Sequence record: NC_028950.1 | Reading direction: 5' to 3' (one strand) | DNA length: 64,000 nt | Part shown: positions 31,254 to 37,497 of the stretch, piece by piece | How positions within the stretch are numbered: position 1 is the first letter of the stretch | Layout: every line of letters starts with the position of its first letter | The notes under the pieces: model-generated | Seen by the model: the letters and a program-made list of their open reading frames with translations, nothing else | What the model was told of the DNA's origin: nothing | Database searches by the model: none | Made by a program: the position numbers and the translations under genes

Positions 31254-32189
31254 ATGGCAACGGATCAACAAGCTGGTACGCAAGACGGCGCAGCAGTCGA
31301 CACGACCAAGCAAGACGCAACGCAAACGCCGCCGGCAACGGGCGCGAACGACACGGCCGCTCCGGCAGCCGATGCGACGGCAAAGGACCAGGCTGCTCCG
31401 GCCGCAGGCACGCAAGATACGAGCGCTACCGATGCAGCTGCAGCCGCTGCTGCTGCTCAAGAAGCTGCCGACAAGCAAGCAGCAGCTGACGCTCAGGCTG
31501 CCGCCGACGCACAAGCTGCACAAGCTGCCGCAGATGCCGCAGCAGCAGCAGCAAAGGCACAGCCCGTGACCGCGCAGGTTCGCAAGACGATCCCCGCTCC
31601 GGCACCGCAACAAGCGGCTGCAAAGCCGACGGCAACGACTCCCGCCGCCGCTGTCGTCACGAAGCAAGTCGCTGCAGCAGCTACGGTCACCGACACGGCC
31701 GCCAAAGCTCCGGCAAGCGATCGTGATCTTCCCGAAGTCGTCGCAGCAATGAAGGTCGCGAAGCCGCAGACGCAATCGGCTCTGTACCAGGTCATCCAGT
31801 ACGCAATCGACATGCATCCGGGCAAGCGCGTGGAACTGTCGACGATCGAACTGACTCAGGTCAACCTGCGCACGAACCTGTTCACGATCCTGTCGGCAGA
31901 AGACGCGAACTTCAAGGTCGTCTACCAGGCACTGCTCGCAATCGTCAAGGCACACAAGCAGAACTGCTTCGCGATCACGGCACGCAATCGTGGCCTGAAC
32001 TCGGTCAGCTTGGCTGCACTCGACAACAAGGGCATGCGCTTCCTGACGAAGATCGTCGACCTGCTCGTGCTGACGGCCGGCACCAACAACCTCGAACAAG
32101 TCAAGCAGCACTACGACTTCTCGAAGCTGGCCGAATGGTGCCCGAACGTGCGCATCCAGCAGAACCTGACGTCGTACTACTCGGCGTAA
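31254..32189 (+). CDS. Conserved hypothetical protein (phiKZ gp81 position) with Ala/Gln/Asp/Thr-rich N-terminal half
   Basis: 311 aa; GGAG RBS; high-expression codons; globular C-terminal domain. Confidence 0.75.
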   Translation: MATDQQAGTQDGAAVDTTKQDATQTPPATGANDTAAPAADATAKDQAAPAAGTQDTSATDAAAAAAAAQEAADKQAAADAQAAADAQAAQAAADAAAAAAKAQPVTAQVRKTIPAPAPQQAAAKPTATTPAAAVVTKQVAAAATVTDTAAKAPASDRDLPEVVAAMKVAKPQTQSALYQVIQYAIDMHPGKRVELSTIELTQVNLRTNLFTILSAEDANFKVVYQALLAIVKAHKQNCFAITARNRGLNSVSLAALDNKGMRFLTKIVDLLVLTAGTNNLEQVKQHYDFSKLAEWCPNVRIQQNLTSYYSA

Positions 32190-32253: not shown

Positions 32254-33114
32254 TTAGGCGTAATTCATTTTGCGTGCTTTGCGATTCTGCTTCTTGATAC
32301 GAGCAGAACGCTGACGACGATTCTTCTGATGCTCCTGGTTATCCAGGCGAGCTTGTGTTGCGTAGTTCTCACGCTCCACATGCTTCACAGCACCAGCGAA
32401 GTATTGGTCGATACCACGCTCGAAGAATTCATGACGTACGTTATCCCACGTCGTGAGATCTTCGTCTTCCTTGCACATGTCGAACGGCACAGCGCAAGAC
32501 ATGATGACGCTTTGCGAGATCGGGCGACCAAAGAACTCCAGGATGGCGACGGCCATGCATTCGCAGCGATCAGCATAGTGCAGGTGCTGACGATGACGAT
32601 ACAGAACACCATTCAGGTTCTTGATGCGGAAGTGATGTTCCACGAACTGCATCAGATCCATGCCGATGGCCTGCAAGCCTTTACGACCGGAGTACTCGAT
32701 GACTGCCTGCATACCGTGCATCATGATGACTGCGTAGTAGTTGGGCATGTACTGGCCGATGTAATGCGACTTTGTGCAAGCGCCTTCGTAAGCGATCATT
32801 TCATCTTCGATCTGATCGAGCACACCCTTGGTAAATCGCACCAGTGAATAATTCTGATTCTTGCTGGCCGCGATGAACTTCTGGAGGCTGTCTTTGAACG
32901 TGTCGTACTTCAGCTGCTGGGCACTACGTTCTCGACTGCTTTGAAGCTGAGCCGCATACAGCAAGCGCTTGAGTTCACGCTTGTCTTTACGCGACATTTT
33001 CTTTTCTTTCTTTGGTCTCTTCCAGGAGAAGAAAGCTTTGATCGCGATGACAACGATCAGAGCAAACAGCCCCAGTACCCCAACACCCACAGCGCTCAAG
33101 TTATACATTTTCAA
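32254..33114 (-). CDS. Hypothetical protein with N-terminal membrane anchor and basic tails
   Basis: AVGVGVLGLFALIVVIAIKAFFSW then KRPKKEKK; 286 aa. Confidence 0.7.
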   Translation of the reverse strand: MKMYNLSAVGVGVLGLFALIVVIAIKAFFSWKRPKKEKKMSRKDKRELKRLLYAAQLQSSRERSAQQLKYDTFKDSLQKFIAASKNQNYSLVRFTKGVLDQIEDEMIAYEGACTKSHYIGQYMPNYYAVIMMHGMQAVIEYSGRKGLQAIGMDLMQFVEHHFRIKNLNGVLYRHRQHLHYADRCECMAVAILEFFGRPISQSVIMSCAVPFDMCKEDEDLTTWDNVRHEFFERGIDQYFAGAVKHVERENYATQARLDNQEHQKNRRQRSARIKKQNRKARKMNYA

Positions 33115-33131
33115 ACTCTTCTTGGTTTATG

Positions 33132-33536
33132 TCATTCAGGAATGTAGGAAAGAACTACGTACGCAATACCCGGTTCGAGTCCGATCTTGTCACCTAGGAT
33201 CGGAACCAGGCTGATGCCGGCCAAAGTCGACAGATAAAGCGCTGTCAACCCAGCTTTGTCGTCTTCGAAAGTGCATTCACAAGTGAAAGCGCCATCGTCC
33301 TCGACAATTTTGCCAGCCTTAATGCACTGGCCAAAATCCGTTTTGCCGGGATTCTTCTCCCGGATGTACTGCTGGAGAGCATATGCCAAACGAGCCGGTC
33401 TGGAGCCCTCGTTGAAGGCCGCAAAGTGCTTCCTCCACTCATCTACGGTGGTCTCATACTCCGGCGGCAGAAAAATGTCCACGACCTGGTTAGTACGAGA
33501 CCGGATAGTCTTTTGAACTAACCGGTCAAGACTCAT
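33132..33536 (-). CDS. Hypothetical protein (134 aa)
   Basis: GAGGAG RBS; 1 nt from the upstream stop. Confidence 0.7.
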   Translation of the reverse strand: MSLDRLVQKTIRSRTNQVVDIFLPPEYETTVDEWRKHFAAFNEGSRPARLAYALQQYIREKNPGKTDFGQCIKAGKIVEDDGAFTCECTFEDDKAGLTALYLSTLAGISLVPILGDKIGLEPGIAYVVLSYIPE

Positions 33537-33537
33537 A

Positions 33538-33813
33538 TTACTCCTCGTTCAGATGCTTAATTACCTTGTCAAAGACGTCCTGCCAGGTAGCGAACGGGCC
33601 ATCGAGAAATCCGATCTCCAGTTCATCTTCCAGTTCAGACATGATGTCCATGTGATCCAGCGAATCCAGATCCCCGCTCTGGAAAGGCAACGCCAGGAAC
33701 TCACGGAACTCCGTACTGTTCTCGACCGCGGTCTTGCGAACCGTTTTCGTGTCGTACGACGAAACTACTTGAACGAGCACCCGTCGTGCTCTTTGTGCTT
33801 TGGCCTCAGCCAT
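33538..33813 (-). CDS. Acyl carrier protein (ACP) homolog
   Basis: 91 aa from ATG 33813 (AGGGG RBS); GDLDSLDHMDIMSELEDELEI matches the phosphopantetheine site DSL-x-E-x-M-x-LE; acidic, predicted four-helix pattern. Confidence 0.75.
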   Translation of the reverse strand: MAEAKAQRARRVLVQVVSSYDTKTVRKTAVENSTEFREFLALPFQSGDLDSLDHMDIMSELEDELEIGFLDGPFATWQDVFDKVIKHLNEE

Positions 33814-33871
33814 TTTAAAAACCCCTGCATTTGTTATTGCTGTTACATGGTTTCGGTCGAAAACCAAATAA

Positions 33872-34069
33872 TCAGTCCCGCTTGATGTTGTACAGGTCTT
33901 TAAGCTCGGGATGGCTGACGCGAAGCTGAATCATGTCCCAATTGTTCGGTATTTCCTTGAATTCAAAGAACATATTAAACGCCTGCCCTTTCTCGTCTAC
34001 TACCTGACAGAGAATGTGCTTGTCCTGAGGCAGTTTCTTCATTTGTTCGATTATGTCTGCGGGAGTCAT
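33872..34069 (-). CDS. Hypothetical protein (65 aa)
   Basis: GAGG RBS; ATG start. Confidence 0.6.
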   Translation of the reverse strand: MTPADIIEQMKKLPQDKHILCQVVDEKGQAFNMFFEFKEIPNNWDMIQLRVSHPELKDLYNIKRD

Positions 34070-34094
34070 AAGACCTCAAAAAAATAAGTAGGCA

Positions 34095-34140
34095 GCAAAA
34101 AGGGCGGTACAGAGTGGCCGAAGCCACCCCATACCGTGCC
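34095..34140 (-). terminator. Intrinsic terminator (UUCG loop, U-tract)
   Basis: Minus strand GGCACGGTATGGGGTGGC-TTCG-GCCACTCTGTACCGCC-CTTTTT. Confidence 0.8.
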
Positions 34141-34617
34141 TAAGATGAACTGAACTTACATCCCAAGGTCGTCGAGTTAACAACGACTATGGGCTATAAG
34201 CTTTGCAGCGTTTCCCAACGGATACTTCACTTATAACTGTCCCGAAAAGACCCCTTACAATCGATGCGGGCTTAATACACACGAAGGCCGAACGACGTCC
34301 CCGCAAGCGCGAACGCGCGCGCCAGCGATTTACGTCAGGCATCACTAAGTCCTTAAAGGGAAACTCATATCGGCGGCACTAAGAGGCGGCCATGAGTTGT
34401 GATCTTCGCGCAGCTTAGAGCAGTAGTATCGAGACTCTGCCTTCACCACATACGACGTGTGTATTTCGCGGGCCTTTCACCCGAGTGAGGAACTAAGTGG
34501 CAACCATGCGGCCAATTCCAACACCTCTGCCTCGAACAGATCTTCAGAAGCCATCTTGTTAAAGAACGAGACGGCCGACCAGTCTCTCACGAGATTAGGT
34601 CAGCCGCCAGATCACGC
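34141..34617 (-). ncRNA. Candidate large structured non-coding RNA of unknown class
   Basis: No ORF of 60 aa or more; multiple stems with GNRA loops; 10-bp long-range complement (34274-34283 with 34456-34465); lies between a stop codon and a terminator. Confidence 0.55.
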
Positions 34618-35952
34618 TTACGGTTGAAGCGAGTCGGTTTGGTCGACAGCAGCTGCGCCGTCAGCATCGGCCTTCACGTCGGTCGCCGCCGGCGTTTGGA
34701 CTTCAGCTTGAACAGCAGCATCGACGACCGGAGCCGCATCTGCGGCAACTGCCGGGGTTTCAGCGGTCGGGGCAGCGTCGGCGGGAGCAGCGACTTGTTC
34801 AGCCGTTGCGTCCACTGCCGGCGTTTCCACGGCCGGAACTTCTGCCTGCGCTTGTGCAGCGTCGGTTTCCACCGGCGCAGCCGTTTGCGCTGCGTCAGCA
34901 GCTTGTTCCACCGGAGCAGCGTCGACAGGGGCGCCAGCCAGTGCTGCAGCCGTTGCCGGATCTGCATTCACTTCGGGCGTTTGTGCCAGAGCTTCGGGCG
35001 AGTGATCGACTTCTTGCGAAGCGTCACCAGCCGGAGCGGCTGCTTGTTCGACAGCGGGAGCTTCAGCTTGAGCAGCGTCTGCTGCCGGTGCATCCACTTG
35101 TGCTGCGACTTCCGGTGCTGCTTGCTCGCCAGCGGCGGGGTCGGCTGCAGGAGCGGCTTGTTCAGCAACGCCTGCGTCGGCTGCGCCAGCCGGTTGAGCT
35201 TGATCTGCAACAGCAGCGACGGTCGTGTCAGCTGCAGCTTGGGCCGGAACTTCGGCTTGGGCATCTGCTGCGTTCACGTCGCCTTGCGGAGCTGCGTCAG
35301 CCGGAGCCGGTTCTTGACCTGCGGCCGGGTCCACTTCTGCTGCTGCATCTGCAGCCGGAGCTTCCGGTTGAGCGGCTTGGTCAGCTGCTTGTTCCGGTTG
35401 AGCGTCGGTGGCTGCGGGAGCTTGCGGAACTTCCGGGGTATCCGGTTGTGCCGAAGCGTCTGCGGGCTGTTCCACTGCCGGTGCAGCTTGTTCAGCCGTA
35501 CCTGCATCCGTGCCCGCTGCCGGATCTTGTTCGACGGCCGGAGCATCGCCCGTCGGTTGTGCTTCTGCCGCGCCTGCGTCGCCTGCCGGTGCTGCATCGG
35601 CGGGTTGCTGCACGTCCTGGCCGGCTGCGGCTGCTGCCGAATCCGTACCAGCATCTTGCGTTTGGTCACCAGCGGCGATCTGTGCATCCAGACCAGCTGC
35701 TGCTGCACCTGCGGCCGCGGCGGCTGCCGTGCCGTTGTCGCCCAGACCGAGCGCTTCGTTCGTTGCGTCGCCCAGCGGCGCGTCAGTCAGTGCTGCCACA
35801 CCGGCGTCGACTTGAGTGTTCGAATGCTCGTCTTTCTTCTTGTGGAAAAGGCCGACGATGCGTTCGACTACGTGTTCGGGCAGTGCTGCGAGGGCTTCGA
35901 TAGCCAGCACCTCGGCTTTGAGTTCGTCGAGAACTTTGTGGATGATGCTCAC
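34618..35952 (-). CDS. Acidic Ala/Pro/Gln/Asp-rich intrinsically disordered protein with a short N-terminal helical domain
   Basis: 444 aa; GTG start with AAGGA RBS; repeated APAVEQ/EQAAPA/QAEVPA; no W, Y or C. Confidence 0.75.
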   Translation of the reverse strand: MSIIHKVLDELKAEVLAIEALAALPEHVVERIVGLFHKKKDEHSNTQVDAGVAALTDAPLGDATNEALGLGDNGTAAAAAAGAAAAGLDAQIAAGDQTQDAGTDSAAAAAGQDVQQPADAAPAGDAGAAEAQPTGDAPAVEQDPAAGTDAGTAEQAAPAVEQPADASAQPDTPEVPQAPAATDAQPEQAADQAAQPEAPAADAAAEVDPAAGQEPAPADAAPQGDVNAADAQAEVPAQAAADTTVAAVADQAQPAGAADAGVAEQAAPAADPAAGEQAAPEVAAQVDAPAADAAQAEAPAVEQAAAPAGDASQEVDHSPEALAQTPEVNADPATAAALAGAPVDAAPVEQAADAAQTAAPVETDAAQAQAEVPAVETPAVDATAEQVAAPADAAPTAETPAVAADAAPVVDAAVQAEVQTPAATDVKADADGAAAVDQTDSLQP

Positions 35953-35987
35953 GATTTTTCCTTGAAAGGAGTGTTTTAAAAAGACTG

Positions 35988-36020
35988 CTCAACCAGCAAA
36001 AACGTTGTTACTGGCTCATA
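35988..36020 (-). promoter_or_regulatory. Late-promoter-like TATG followed by a 5' leader hairpin
   Basis: Minus strand TATG at 36020-36017, then AGCCAGTAA-CAACGTTT-TTGCTGGTT stem. Confidence 0.4.
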
Positions 36021-36035
36021 CAATTTCGGCCGATT

Positions 36036-36398
36036 TCAGTGCCAAATGATGGTCACGAAAGGTCCTGCAACGGCGAAGGCGAATATCAGTTTGCACACAA
36101 TGTGTATCAGCTGATCACCCATCGCACTGATGATCTTGTTGACCCGCAACATGTCGGTCGCCCAATGCCAGGCGAACTCACAGAAACCGATCGTGAAGGC
36201 TGCTTTCGGATTGAACAACCAGATCACGCTACCTGCAGCTGCACCCTGAATCAGGGCATGCATCGTCAGGCCATACCACCACGGGAAGCCAGGCACCAAC
36301 CTGTTCTTGATGTCGGACAGGAATTGTCCTTGACCAGGAAAGTCGAAGAATGCGTGAACTGCCAGCAGGAGGCCGAGAACTGCAAGGAACGTTGTCAT
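36036..36398 (-). CDS. DUF3307-like membrane protein (His-rich putative metal site)
   Basis: HAFFDFPGQ, HALIQG, HWATD, DQLIH motifs with four hydrophobic helices. Confidence 0.75.
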   Translation of the reverse strand: MTTFLAVLGLLLAVHAFFDFPGQGQFLSDIKNRLVPGFPWWYGLTMHALIQGAAAGSVIWLFNPKAAFTIGFCEFAWHWATDMLRVNKIISAMGDQLIHIVCKLIFAFAVAGPFVTIIWH

Positions 36399-36661
36399 TA
36401 TGGTTATCCTTGAAGGGGTGGCCCGAGATCTTTATCGTTGGTTAGAACGCTTTGTTGAGCCGCTTACCGTAGGAGGTTGGAGTATGCGCTCGAACTCGAT
36501 CTCGAAGCCGAAAAAAAATAGCAGGAAGGCATCTTCCTGCAAAGGGGGGTTGCCCAAAACGAAGTCAGTTAAACGATGGGTCTAGGGCTGCCGCATGGTG
36601 CGTGCTGCAATCGTTTTACGTCGGTCGTTCTGGGCAAATCATAGCTGATGTAATTATTTTT

Positions 36662-36964
36662 TTATTTCCGGCGACATTGCCGGTAGAACTGTTCCCACGA
36701 ACCATCGAGGATTCGCTTCAGCCCTTCTTCGGTGATCCAGTGATCGCCAATACGTTCGCCACTGAAACCATGCTCGACTTCTTCCAGCGGCATCCACGAG
36801 TAATGGATGAAGTCTTCGACATCCACCGTGGGATCAGGCAGCGTATATTCGGTGCTGACCGATTTCGTTCTGTCCCGCAGTTCCGTCAATGTGAGGCGTG
36901 TCTTGCCGGGATTGTGGCTGACAACAACGTGCTCCACTGCAAAGCTTTGTTCACCTACTGCCAT
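36662..36964 (-). CDS. Hypothetical protein (100 aa)
   Basis: AAGGAG RBS. Confidence 0.65.
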   Translation of the reverse strand: MAVGEQSFAVEHVVVSHNPGKTRLTLTELRDRTKSVSTEYTLPDPTVDVEDFIHYSWMPLEEVEHGFSGERIGDHWITEEGLKRILDGSWEQFYRQCRRK

Positions 36965-36987
36965 GACTTACTCCTTCAGTTTTGAAA

Positions 36988-37497
36988 TTAAAGTTCGACG
37001 AAGTCGACTTTGGGACCATATCTCAATCCACCACTCCATTCGCTACTGTCGCGCAGCTTGCCGTGAATGGTGGAACGGATAATGCTTTCGCGTTGGGATT
37101 TGCTGTAGTAGAGACGAGGAATGTGCATGTCGCACTCTACAGCGATATTGTCGACGGACACCAGCACTTTGACCGGCAGCATGTGATCATGACGGCCCAT
37201 GTTGTCACGATCATTCAGCGCTTCAGCAATTTTCAAGAAGGTATTGCGCTGATTCGTGAGATAGTCATAGGCCGGATCAAACGGACCGCAGTCTTGTGCC
37301 AGCTGGTCGCCTTCATTGACGAGTTTCATGCACTCGTCGTAGGAAATGGGGCCGATGGTTTTTAACCACAACGGAAGCATCATCTCGGCACGACGCTTCA
37401 ATCTTTCACTACCCTGAGCCCGATCCTCCATCAGGTCTTTCAAAGTGGCTTCGCGTTTTTTCGCGATTTGGTTTTCTAGTTCTTGACGGGAAAGCAT
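36988..37497 (-). CDS. Hypothetical protein (169 aa)
   Basis: Tightly packed operon; AAGGG RBS. Confidence 0.7.
   Translation of the reverse strand: MLSRQELENQIAKKREATLKDLMEDRAQGSERLKRRAEMMLPLWLKTIGPISYDECMKLVNEGDQLAQDCGPFDPAYDYLTNQRNTFLKIAEALNDRDNMGRHDHMLPVKVLVSVDNIAVECDMHIPRLYYSKSQRESIIRSTIHGKLRDSSEWSGGLRYGPKVDFVEL

Follow-up and report, generated by a model that had tools for sequence, protein, structure and literature searches.

We describe here a large structured RNA encoded on the minus strand of Ralstonia phage RSL2. The DNA analysed, hereafter the window, is a 64-kb stretch of record NC_028950.1 that corresponds with 100% identity to the last 64 kb of the phage (window coordinate = record coordinate - 159,932). 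RSL2 belongs to the genus Chiangmaivirus in the family Chimalliviridae, the nucleus-forming jumbo phages. The conserved core of the RNA, 461 nucleotides (nt) at 34095-34555 on the minus strand, runs from the sequence GAUGGCU to the U-tract of an intrinsic terminator and is located between an open reading frame (ORF) of 444 amino acids (aa) upstream and ORF197 downstream, in an interval that is unannotated in all records checked. The analysis identifies this element as a real and conserved family of large structured RNA that had not been described before and that, as far as seen, is confined to Chiangmaivirus; as a structured RNA it is very probably functional. An earlier note had proposed an uncharacterised large non-coding RNA (ncRNA) of a nucleus-forming phage at 34141-34617, a proposal now supported by the taxonomy of RSL2, by a covarying minus-strand structure and by the absence of any Rfam family or paper corresponding to it.

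The RNA was found in all nine sequenced Chiangmaivirus phages (RSL2, FLC4-5C, FLC4-4C, FLC4-11C, FLC6, FLC8, RsoM3USA, RSF1 and SURPRISE13) and in four environmental contigs, one from a JGI metagenome (L013) and three from Logan (L018, L020 and L019, the last of them partial), with identities of 62-99% across members. In each of the eight phage relatives the corresponding position holds 500-790 nt without annotation, which align over their full length at 73-99% identity, and the most divergent member is L018, at 62-70% identity. A blastn search of 50,697 phage records at word size 11 returned the RNA once per genome and in Chiangmaivirus only, and nhmmer detected no paralogue of it in the window, so that it is a single-copy element at a fixed locus. 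Exact-pattern scanning of IMG/VR with four conserved-block patterns retrieved only RSL2 and RSF1, the same kind of scan of the JGI metagenomes with conserved blocks gave no match, and two patterns were without a match in a set of 185,579 bacterial and archaeal genomes, one per species. A protein search anchored on the downstream gene ORF195 yielded one JGI metagenome contig and four Logan contigs, three of the latter carrying the RNA, and gave nothing new in IMG/VR. The nearest other Chimalliviridae (RP12, Xoo-sp14 and others) share ~34% RNA polymerase subunit identity with these phages, against 88-97% within the genus; RP12 and Xoo-sp14 do possess ORF-free gaps near the RNA polymerase gene, but nhmmer found no similarity between these and the RNA.

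At the nucleotide level the RNA is as well conserved as the best-conserved neighbouring genes, and better conserved than the gene upstream of it. The flanking gene content shifts while the RNA stays: ORF197 has been lost in FLC6, FLC8 and L018, and L013 has gained an ORF of 103 aa (1138-1449, no family match) between the upstream gene and the RNA. That the RNA is held constant while flanking genes drift or vanish indicates that the phage needs the shape of this RNA.

The helices of the RNA are kept by compensatory changes, and several of its loops and joining strands barely change. RNAalifold, given the seven phage sequences, returned 157 pairs, 26 of which carried compensatory changes, and when each lineage was folded alone, domain by domain, the same architecture was obtained every time. 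A curated structure derived from these per-lineage folds, whose helices are placed below in window coordinates, was counted on MAFFT alignments of seven and of nine sequences, using column shuffles and 3' partners slid by 1-3 columns as controls. With nine sequences the structure comprised 119 pairs, 92.5% of the 1047 helix cells were paired, and 32 pairs had changed on both sides, as against 17.4 +/- 2.5 in shuffled alignments (0 of 500 reached 32) and 6-15 in slid ones; the corresponding covariation scores were 0.243, 0.157 and 0.04-0.07. With seven sequences there were 132 pairs, 95.1% of cells were paired, and 28 pairs had changed on both sides, as against 15.5 +/- 2.4 after shuffling (0 of 500) and 3-8 after sliding, with a covariation score of 0.218 compared with 0.135 for the shuffles. 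These figures are conservative, because helix P10 and part of P11 of L018 were misaligned by MAFFT and were either left out of the nine-sequence count or scored as unpaired. Conservation and covariation in relatives had been named by the earlier note as a check on its proposal, and both were found, in the form of the 32 of 119 pairs changed on both sides.

Folding energies were computed for a 518-nt RNA on the minus strand, whose minimum free energy (MFE) was -202.7 kcal/mol as against -176.7 +/- 6.7 kcal/mol for dinucleotide shuffles (z = -3.86, 0 of 100 as good); for the plus strand the z-score was -2.94. The consensus energy was -154 kcal/mol on the minus strand and -111 kcal/mol for the reverse complement, a difference of 43 kcal/mol in favour of the minus strand, and G-U pairs occupied 173 helix cells (16%), each of which would become an A-C mismatch on the other strand or in a DNA cruciform. 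The RNA is thus read from the minus strand. The earlier description of a densely structured interval was borne out by the comparison with dinucleotide-shuffled controls that it had itself suggested, every stem that it listed is present in the sequence, and its choice of the minus strand on account of strand-specific G-U pairs agrees with the consensus energy and with the 173 G-U cells.

The element is non-coding. The longest ORFs within 34141-34617 are of 59, 56 and 52 aa, in keeping with the original description of an interval devoid of ORFs of at least 60 aa, and none of the reading frames is conserved in the nine lineages. Every frame on both strands contains stop codons in all nine lineages (1-9 each), and the frame and position of the longest ORFs vary from lineage to lineage. 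Three of the four indels relative to FLC4-5C are not multiples of three, nor are 9-12 indels relative to each other relative, so that neither the position and phase of a reading frame nor indels in multiples of three were found to be maintained. A 25-codon AUG-initiated ORF at the 5' end of the RNA was considered and rejected, its AUG being lost in RsoM3USA (AGG) and its stop codon shifted in SURPRISE13.

Comparison with known RNA classes also supported the earlier statement that the RNA is of no recognisable class. None of the 4227 models of Rfam 15, which include introns, RNase P, tmRNA, 6S, SRP, GOLLD, ROOL, OLE, HEARO, raiA and riboswitches, reached its gathering threshold anywhere in the window, this being the search that the earlier note had recommended. 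When the cut-off was relaxed to E <= 10, only MESTIT1_1 (19 bits, threshold 50) and SECIS_5 (16 bits, threshold 50) were returned, both in the terminator/ORF197 region and both at chance level, and nothing was returned in the RNA of RSF1, SURPRISE13, RsoM3USA or L013. ARAGORN detected no transfer RNA (tRNA) or transfer-messenger RNA (tmRNA) in the 64 kb. No paper describing the RNA was found in the literature. A published screen of IMG/VR for structured RNAs needed three unique regions per family, and it probably could not have reported this RNA, because IMG/VR holds only RSL2 and RSF1 from the genus.

The overall fold comprises about 11 helices, all on the minus strand: P2-P4 at the 5' end; P5, which closes a four-way junction with P6, P7 and P8; P9-P11; and a terminator capped by a UUCG loop. 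The P2 hairpin (34525-34549) presents the invariant loop segment CUGAAGAUCUGU, which contains the palindrome AGAUCU; at pair 7:31 seven sequences have U-G, one has G-U and one is unpaired. P3 (34485-34524) is variable in sequence, and the same hairpin was obtained in independent folds of eight lineages. Six of its seven aligned pairs have changed on both sides, and its closing GUG/CAC is replaced by ACA/UGU in L018. The P4 hairpin, CGGGU-GAAAG-GCCCG (34469-34483), has G-C at pair 75:87 in five sequences and A-U in four, and is connected to P5 by an invariant joiner. P5 is a long-range helix of 10 base pairs (bp) between AAUACACACG (5' strand, 34456-34465) and CGUGUGUAUU (3' strand, 34274-34283). 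This helix had been picked out in the earlier description as a perfect long-range pair, and it proved to be real and covarying, being 100% paired in the nine sequences, with pair 94:346 present as C-G in five of them and as U-A in four.

The first arm of the junction, P6 (34407-34454), was obtained as the same hairpin in the per-lineage folds. Its stem is almost wholly different in sequence in RSL2, RSF1 and L018, its loop UCUCGA is largely conserved, and five of its eight distal pairs have changed on both sides in the seven-sequence alignment. The second arm, P7 (34341-34403), has a GGCCGCC...GCCGCC apex and a side hairpin, P7b (34350-34361), in which UCC/GGA is replaced by CUC/GAG, both pairs being compensatory. 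The third arm, P8 (34287-34340), ends in a GC-rich apical stem; its helix 14 is 98.8% paired, with four pairs changed on both sides, and seven of the nine sequences share the loop CGCGUU. In L013 an additional hairpin of 46 nt is inserted between P8 and the 3' strand of P5. The apex of P7 (34375-34394) and the distal part of P3 (34489-34508) form a 20-nt near-repeat, 80% identical and reading CAUGGYYGCCNCUUAGUKCC on the RNA strand, which is present in RSL2, RSF1, L013 and L020; P3 is different in the FLC phages, RsoM3USA and SURPRISE13. The near-repeat may have arisen by duplication of a module, or it may be a protein-binding site that occurs twice.

Downstream of the junction, P5 is joined to P9 by the single-stranded segment AAGCCCGCAUCGA (34261-34273), whose columns are near-invariant. 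P9 (34231-34260), with outer strands UUGUAA/UUAUAA, inner strands GGUC/GAC and the loop UUUUCGG, is itself almost invariant; it is 98.9% paired with one-sided changes only, which leaves little power to test this helix. P10 (34208-34225) is closed by a GNRA tetraloop, GGGA, or GAGA in L013 and L018. Its stem changes from CGUU/AACG to GUC/GAC, and pair 403:408 is C-G in four and U-A in three of seven sequences. P11 (34153-34202), placed from per-lineage folds and pair counts, is a long hairpin with internal loops; its distal part has 17 nt fewer in RSL2, and in L018 it is longer and branched. The single strand UCAUCUU that follows (34142-34148) is a candidate partner for AAGAUGG (34551-34557). 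This putative closing helix, P0, was 6-7 of 7 paired in every lineage checked by hand, and in L013, where both strands have changed, 7 of 8 pairs are kept; support for it is weak.

The 3' end of the RNA (34095-34141, stem element 34101-34141) is a G+C-rich hairpin followed directly by a U-tract, the form expected of an intrinsic (Rho-independent) terminator. It consists of a 13-14-bp stem with three outer pairs and a UUCG loop, after which comes CCCUUUUUGC. A terminator scan placed the strongest site of the region 33000-37000 at 34105-34136, with 14 pairs, 8 of them G-C, a UUCG loop and then CCCTTTTTGC. The stem is 100% paired, four of its pairs have changed on both sides, and the terminator belongs to the element.

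The 3' domain contains four near-palindromic segments, X1 (UUGUAA), X2 (UUAUAA), X3 (CUUAUAG) and X4 (UGUAAG), which are of UGCA type in RSF1 and L018. These can pair in two registers, either X1:X2 (the outer stem of P9) together with X3:X4 (the base of P11), or X2:X3 enclosing P10, and every one of the nine lineages preserves both registers. X2:X3 pairs fully (100%) in the seven sequences, pair 385:428 being A-U in three of them, G-C in another three and G-U in the last; L018 keeps 8 of its 9 pairs with a change from U-A to C-G, and the MFE fold of L020 alone uses X2:X3. Because the cores of the segments are palindromes, the two-register pairing may reflect sequence symmetry rather than selection for a switch, and the same segments could equally permit pairing between molecules.

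Three further features were set aside. The pair AAGGCC/GGCCUU, which had been proposed in crossing, pseudoknot-like order next to P5, did not covary, is disrupted in both RSF1 and L013, and is in competition with the supported, covarying P4 and with the base of P8. The threefold CTTAGT remarked upon earlier occurs only in RSL2 and its closest relatives and is not a conserved feature. Pairing of the P2 loop with the loop of P6 or with the 3' tail fails in RSF1, L013 or RsoM3USA.

The 5' edge of the core is sharp at (A)GAUGGCU, ~34555, in all lineages, irrespective of what lies upstream. In RSL2, as in most of the phages, it is preceded by the hairpin P1 (34570-34608, minus strand), built of an 11-bp stem, an internal loop, a 4-bp stem and a GUGA loop and followed by the U-rich run CUCGUUCUUU. 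P1 covaries among the seven phages, is replaced by other hairpins in SURPRISE13 and L018, and is absent in L013, where the TAG of the 103-aa ORF abuts AUGGC. It is probably a terminator or processing hairpin of the upstream gene, outside the conserved core. The linker between P1 and the core, CGUUCUUUAACAAG (34555-34568, minus strand), contains TTTAAC...ATGG and has TTCTTTAAAGATGG as its counterpart in L018; the hairpin and U-rich run are followed by TTCTTTAAC-AAG in the phages and by TTCTTTAAA-G in L018. The interval originally delimited, 34141-34617, consequently needs revision at both ends, its first ~62 nt (P1 and the linker) being the end of the upstream gene and the terminator at 34101-34141 having been wrongly excluded, while the remainder is core.

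The linker motif has parallels elsewhere in the window. TTTAAA is ~20-fold denser in intergenic than in coding DNA of the phage, and TTTAA-N(0-5)-ATGG was seen seven times (9129, 28948, 33810, 38197, 34551, 6423 and 35975) as against 1.4 expected. Four of the seven read TTTAAA(A)TGG and either coincide with a gene start or precede one by no more than ~70 nt, and one variant is found at the 5' edge of the RNA. As a statistical lead, the TTTAAA-type motif is a candidate promoter or leaderless-start element; 22 upstream regions read by eye showed no shared promoter motif beyond this enrichment.

Taken together, the best explanation of the locus is a gene for a ~460-nt ncRNA of a new, Chiangmaivirus-specific family that would be a discrete molecule and act in trans as a scaffold or decoy, although for this combination as a whole our confidence falls somewhat short of even. 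The two parts of it differ in strength. We lean, by a modest degree, towards a discrete ncRNA rather than only an untranslated region (UTR), since the sharp 5' edge, the hairpin and U-run preceding it, the start-like motif, the terminator of its own and the persistence of the RNA despite changes in its flanks all favour a free-standing RNA. A scaffold or decoy role is possible but doubtful. The RNA would be made as a discrete stable species, its 5' end arising either from a start just upstream of AGAUGGC, past the upstream hairpin and U-rich tract, or from processing of a longer transcript, and its 3' end would be protected by the terminator hairpin. During infection it would act in trans as a compact scaffold or decoy binding one or more proteins of the phage or the host, with the conserved GNRA loop and the other conserved loops possibly making tertiary or protein contacts.

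Several observations weigh against this interpretation. A sigma-70 scan found no promoter ahead of the RNA, and the U-tract of P1 is weaker than those of other terminators of the phage, which makes read-through from the upstream gene plausible. The distribution is narrow, being limited to one genus with no detectable homologue in the nearest other Chimalliviridae, and the covariation was counted over only ~7 independent lineages on alignments that were made by MAFFT and are not structural. The argument for a scaffold or decoy is drawn purely from architecture, the neighbouring genes being ORFans.

The strongest competitor, which we regard as unlikely, is a structured 3'UTR of the mRNA of the upstream gene, an acidic protein, that would block 3'-5' decay in cis or control stability, localisation or translation, and that might also be released as a 3'UTR-derived RNA having its terminator in common with the mRNA. 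The RNA lies on the same strand directly past the stop codon of the acidic gene in eight of nine aligned lineages, the order of acidic gene and RNA is conserved even in the most divergent contig, P1 was not listed by the terminator scan, and no sigma-70-like promoter was detected ahead of the RNA. However, the 103-aa ORF of L013 sits between the acidic gene and the RNA, whose core there begins at the stop codon of that ORF, so that no single coding sequence is a constant partner of the RNA. The RNA is also held constant beside an acidic gene that evolves fast and varies in length (223-450 aa), the two are separated in the phages by a hairpin and a U-rich run, and a fold of 460 nt that includes a four-way junction, long-range helices and loops of near-constant sequence goes far beyond what a block to decay needs.

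A more elaborate possibility, which we consider rather improbable, is that of an ornate RNA machine exclusive to this lineage of nucleus-forming phages, the RNA being either a self-assembling homo-oligomer or a switchable or catalytic RNA with a two-register 3' domain. As a homo-oligomer it would assemble through its palindromic loops (AGAUCU in P2 and CGCG in P8) and the four near-palindromic segments. If this were true, such a machine would perform a step of infection that is done by no phage protein.

It is improbable, too, that the RNA works in cis as a leader gating read-through of the terminator into ORF197-ORF194, whether as a riboswitch-like element of very large size or as an attenuator under protein control. 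In favour of this, ~30 nt without an obvious promoter separate the strongest terminator of the region from the start codon that follows, ORF195 and ORF196 downstream are conserved better than the other genes nearby, and the segments of the 3' domain pair in two registers that are both compatible with all lineages, the MFE fold of L020 choosing the alternative. Neither register, however, nor any other alternative pairing was seen to engage the terminator stem, and the sole antiterminator candidate, CCCAUA with UAUGGG, is not conserved in the FLC phages. The gene immediately downstream is not constant, ORF197 having been lost in FLC6, FLC8 and L018 with the RNA kept, and terminators right before the next start codon are common in the RSL2 genome, so that the arrangement is not special. 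Palindromic UUAUAA or UGCA cores predict two registers without selection being required. Known aptamer domains are moreover several-fold smaller than this RNA.

We consider it very improbable that the RNA is a diverged form of a known catalytic or mobile RNA, such as a group I or II intron, an RNase P-like or tmRNA-like RNA, a retron or a guide RNA. Its size and GNRA loop are of the right order, and group I introns are known in Chimalliviridae, the paper on phage 201phi2-1 containing a section on intron identification. Nevertheless, no Rfam match was obtained in the core or in four relatives even at E <= 10, and no covariance-model match to an intron catalytic core (a P3-P7 pseudoknot and G-binding site, or domain V) was found, the sole proposed pseudoknot being unsupported. 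No gene is interrupted and no exon continuity was observed: the stop codon that closes the upstream ORF is conserved in the phages with the same 3' end, another ORF lies upstream in L013, and the downstream ORF197 is unrelated, dispensable and absent in three lineages. The element contains an intrinsic terminator, is single-copy at a fixed locus, and has no reverse transcriptase, recombinase, TnpB/IscB or homing endonuclease gene nearby. Equally improbable is an element acting as DNA through its inverted repeats (a replication origin, or a packaging or recombination site), as might be supposed from a conserved ORF-free stretch rich in such repeats, given the G-U cells and the strand difference in consensus energy reported above, the long-range nested helices and four-way junction that are unlike a cruciform, the lack of any distinctive GC-skew or composition feature at the site, and the canonical RNA terminator at its end.

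The minus strand holds every gene from ~32.2 kb to 40 kb. In AP014693 the gene of the acidic protein, the 444-aa ORF (34618-35952, minus strand), is annotated as ORF198.1. RefSeq NC_028950 omits it and instead keeps ORF198, of 51 aa, on the opposite strand at 35824-35979. The product of the 444-aa ORF has a conserved helical N-terminal part of ~45 aa, followed by an acidic, low-complexity tail of 200-400 aa rich in Ala, Asp, Pro, Gln and Thr, ranges from 223 to 450 aa among relatives and has no match in Pfam or PHROG; homologues of the gene lie upstream of the RNA in all relatives. ORF197 (33872-34069, minus strand) has its start codon ~30 nt past the terminator, and because FLC6, FLC8 and L018 are without it and yet retain the RNA, it is dispensable. 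ORF196 and ORF195 are always present further downstream and are the best-conserved genes nearby, ORF195 (33132-33536, minus strand) having 90-96% amino-acid identity across the genus and the environmental contigs. An AlphaFold model of ORF195 had a pLDDT of 42 and was unusable; in the RefSeq record of RSF1 the ORF195 homologue is annotated over 85 of its 134 codons. ORF194 (32254-33114, minus strand), which adjoins ORF195, is only ~52% identical to its counterparts in RSF1 and SURPRISE13. Searches of the neighbouring proteins against Pfam, PHROGs, NCBIfam and PDB sequences returned only a DUF3307 membrane protein and a sub-threshold ACP-like match, the neighbours of the RNA otherwise being ORFans specific to the genus.

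Two other features of the region were recorded. ORF193 (31254-32189, plus strand) has 62-65% G+C, as against ~50% around it, with a strong skew of A over T; its composition resembles that of the acidic ORF, and it may encode another low-complexity protein. A second ORF-free gap, of 263 nt, is present between ORF199 and ORF200 (36399-36661), with a terminator at 36521-36540.

Structured ncRNAs of more than ~400 nt are rare, and besides ribosomal RNA they comprise RNase P, tmRNA, self-splicing introns, OLE, GOLLD, HEARO, ROOL and raiA. To our knowledge, each of these large RNAs is a ribozyme, a ribonucleoprotein, an RNA-only assembly or a still open puzzle. The RSL2 RNA, confined to one genus, is new as a family; its function may or may not be new. 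Its hosts are culturable and its natural variants are ready-made compensatory mutants, so that its function is directly testable.

The closest likeness is to GOLLD and ROOL, with which the RSL2 RNA shares a size of hundreds of nt, ornateness, carriage by phages and an obscure function, as well as many covarying helices, an intergenic location, and conserved loops and joiners that suggest a compact tertiary fold. GOLLD and ROOL often adjoin tRNA genes. In contrast, the RSL2 RNA has no tRNA within the 64 kb, fails the GOLLD and ROOL models of Rfam even at E <= 10, and belongs to one phage genus and to a different host clade, its carrier being a phage of Burkholderiales. By cryo-electron microscopy, GOLLD and ROOL are reported to be RNA-only homo-oligomers (bioRxiv 10.1101/2024.12.08.627333). 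The palindromic loops of P2 and P8 would likewise allow self-association of the RSL2 RNA.

OLE, HEARO and raiA resemble it as large structured ncRNAs that were defined by covariation and whose roles are obscure or protein-dependent. They are chromosomal RNAs of Firmicutes and other bacteria, whereas the RSL2 RNA is without a match to them in Rfam and has no recognised associated protein family nearby. A small RNA (sRNA) derived from a 3'UTR would likewise be located on the same strand directly past a stop codon and end at the terminator that would end the mRNA. Bacterial sRNAs of this kind are typically 50-150 nt long with a seed region; the RSL2 RNA is three to nine times longer and multi-domain, and in one lineage an ORF intervenes. 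Group I introns of jumbo phages are of similar size, have a GNRA loop and long-range helices and occur in the same virus family, but the RSL2 RNA differs from them in being outside genes, without exon continuity, in containing a terminator and in having no Rfam match.

Within the phiKZ-like nucleus-forming phages only small RNAs have been reported so far. The phiKZ literature holds a prediction of a 75-nt RNA that was unconfirmed by Northern blot, and in 201phi2-1 there are 11 sRNAs of <250 nt, one of which is conserved upstream of a tail gene (PMC11512511). The latter type, sRNA005 of 201phi2-1 and the sRNA upstream of phiKZ gp182, is the only conserved ncRNA reported for Chimalliviridae, and it shares with the RSL2 RNA its conservation among nucleus-forming jumbo phages and its recognition from position and structure (PMC11512511). 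These RNAs, of <250 nt, result from transcription that stops prematurely in the 5'UTR of a tail gene and occur in several genera (PMC11512511). In contrast, the RSL2 RNA bears no sequence relation to them, is ~460 nt long and lies in an accessory-gene region of the phages of a single genus.

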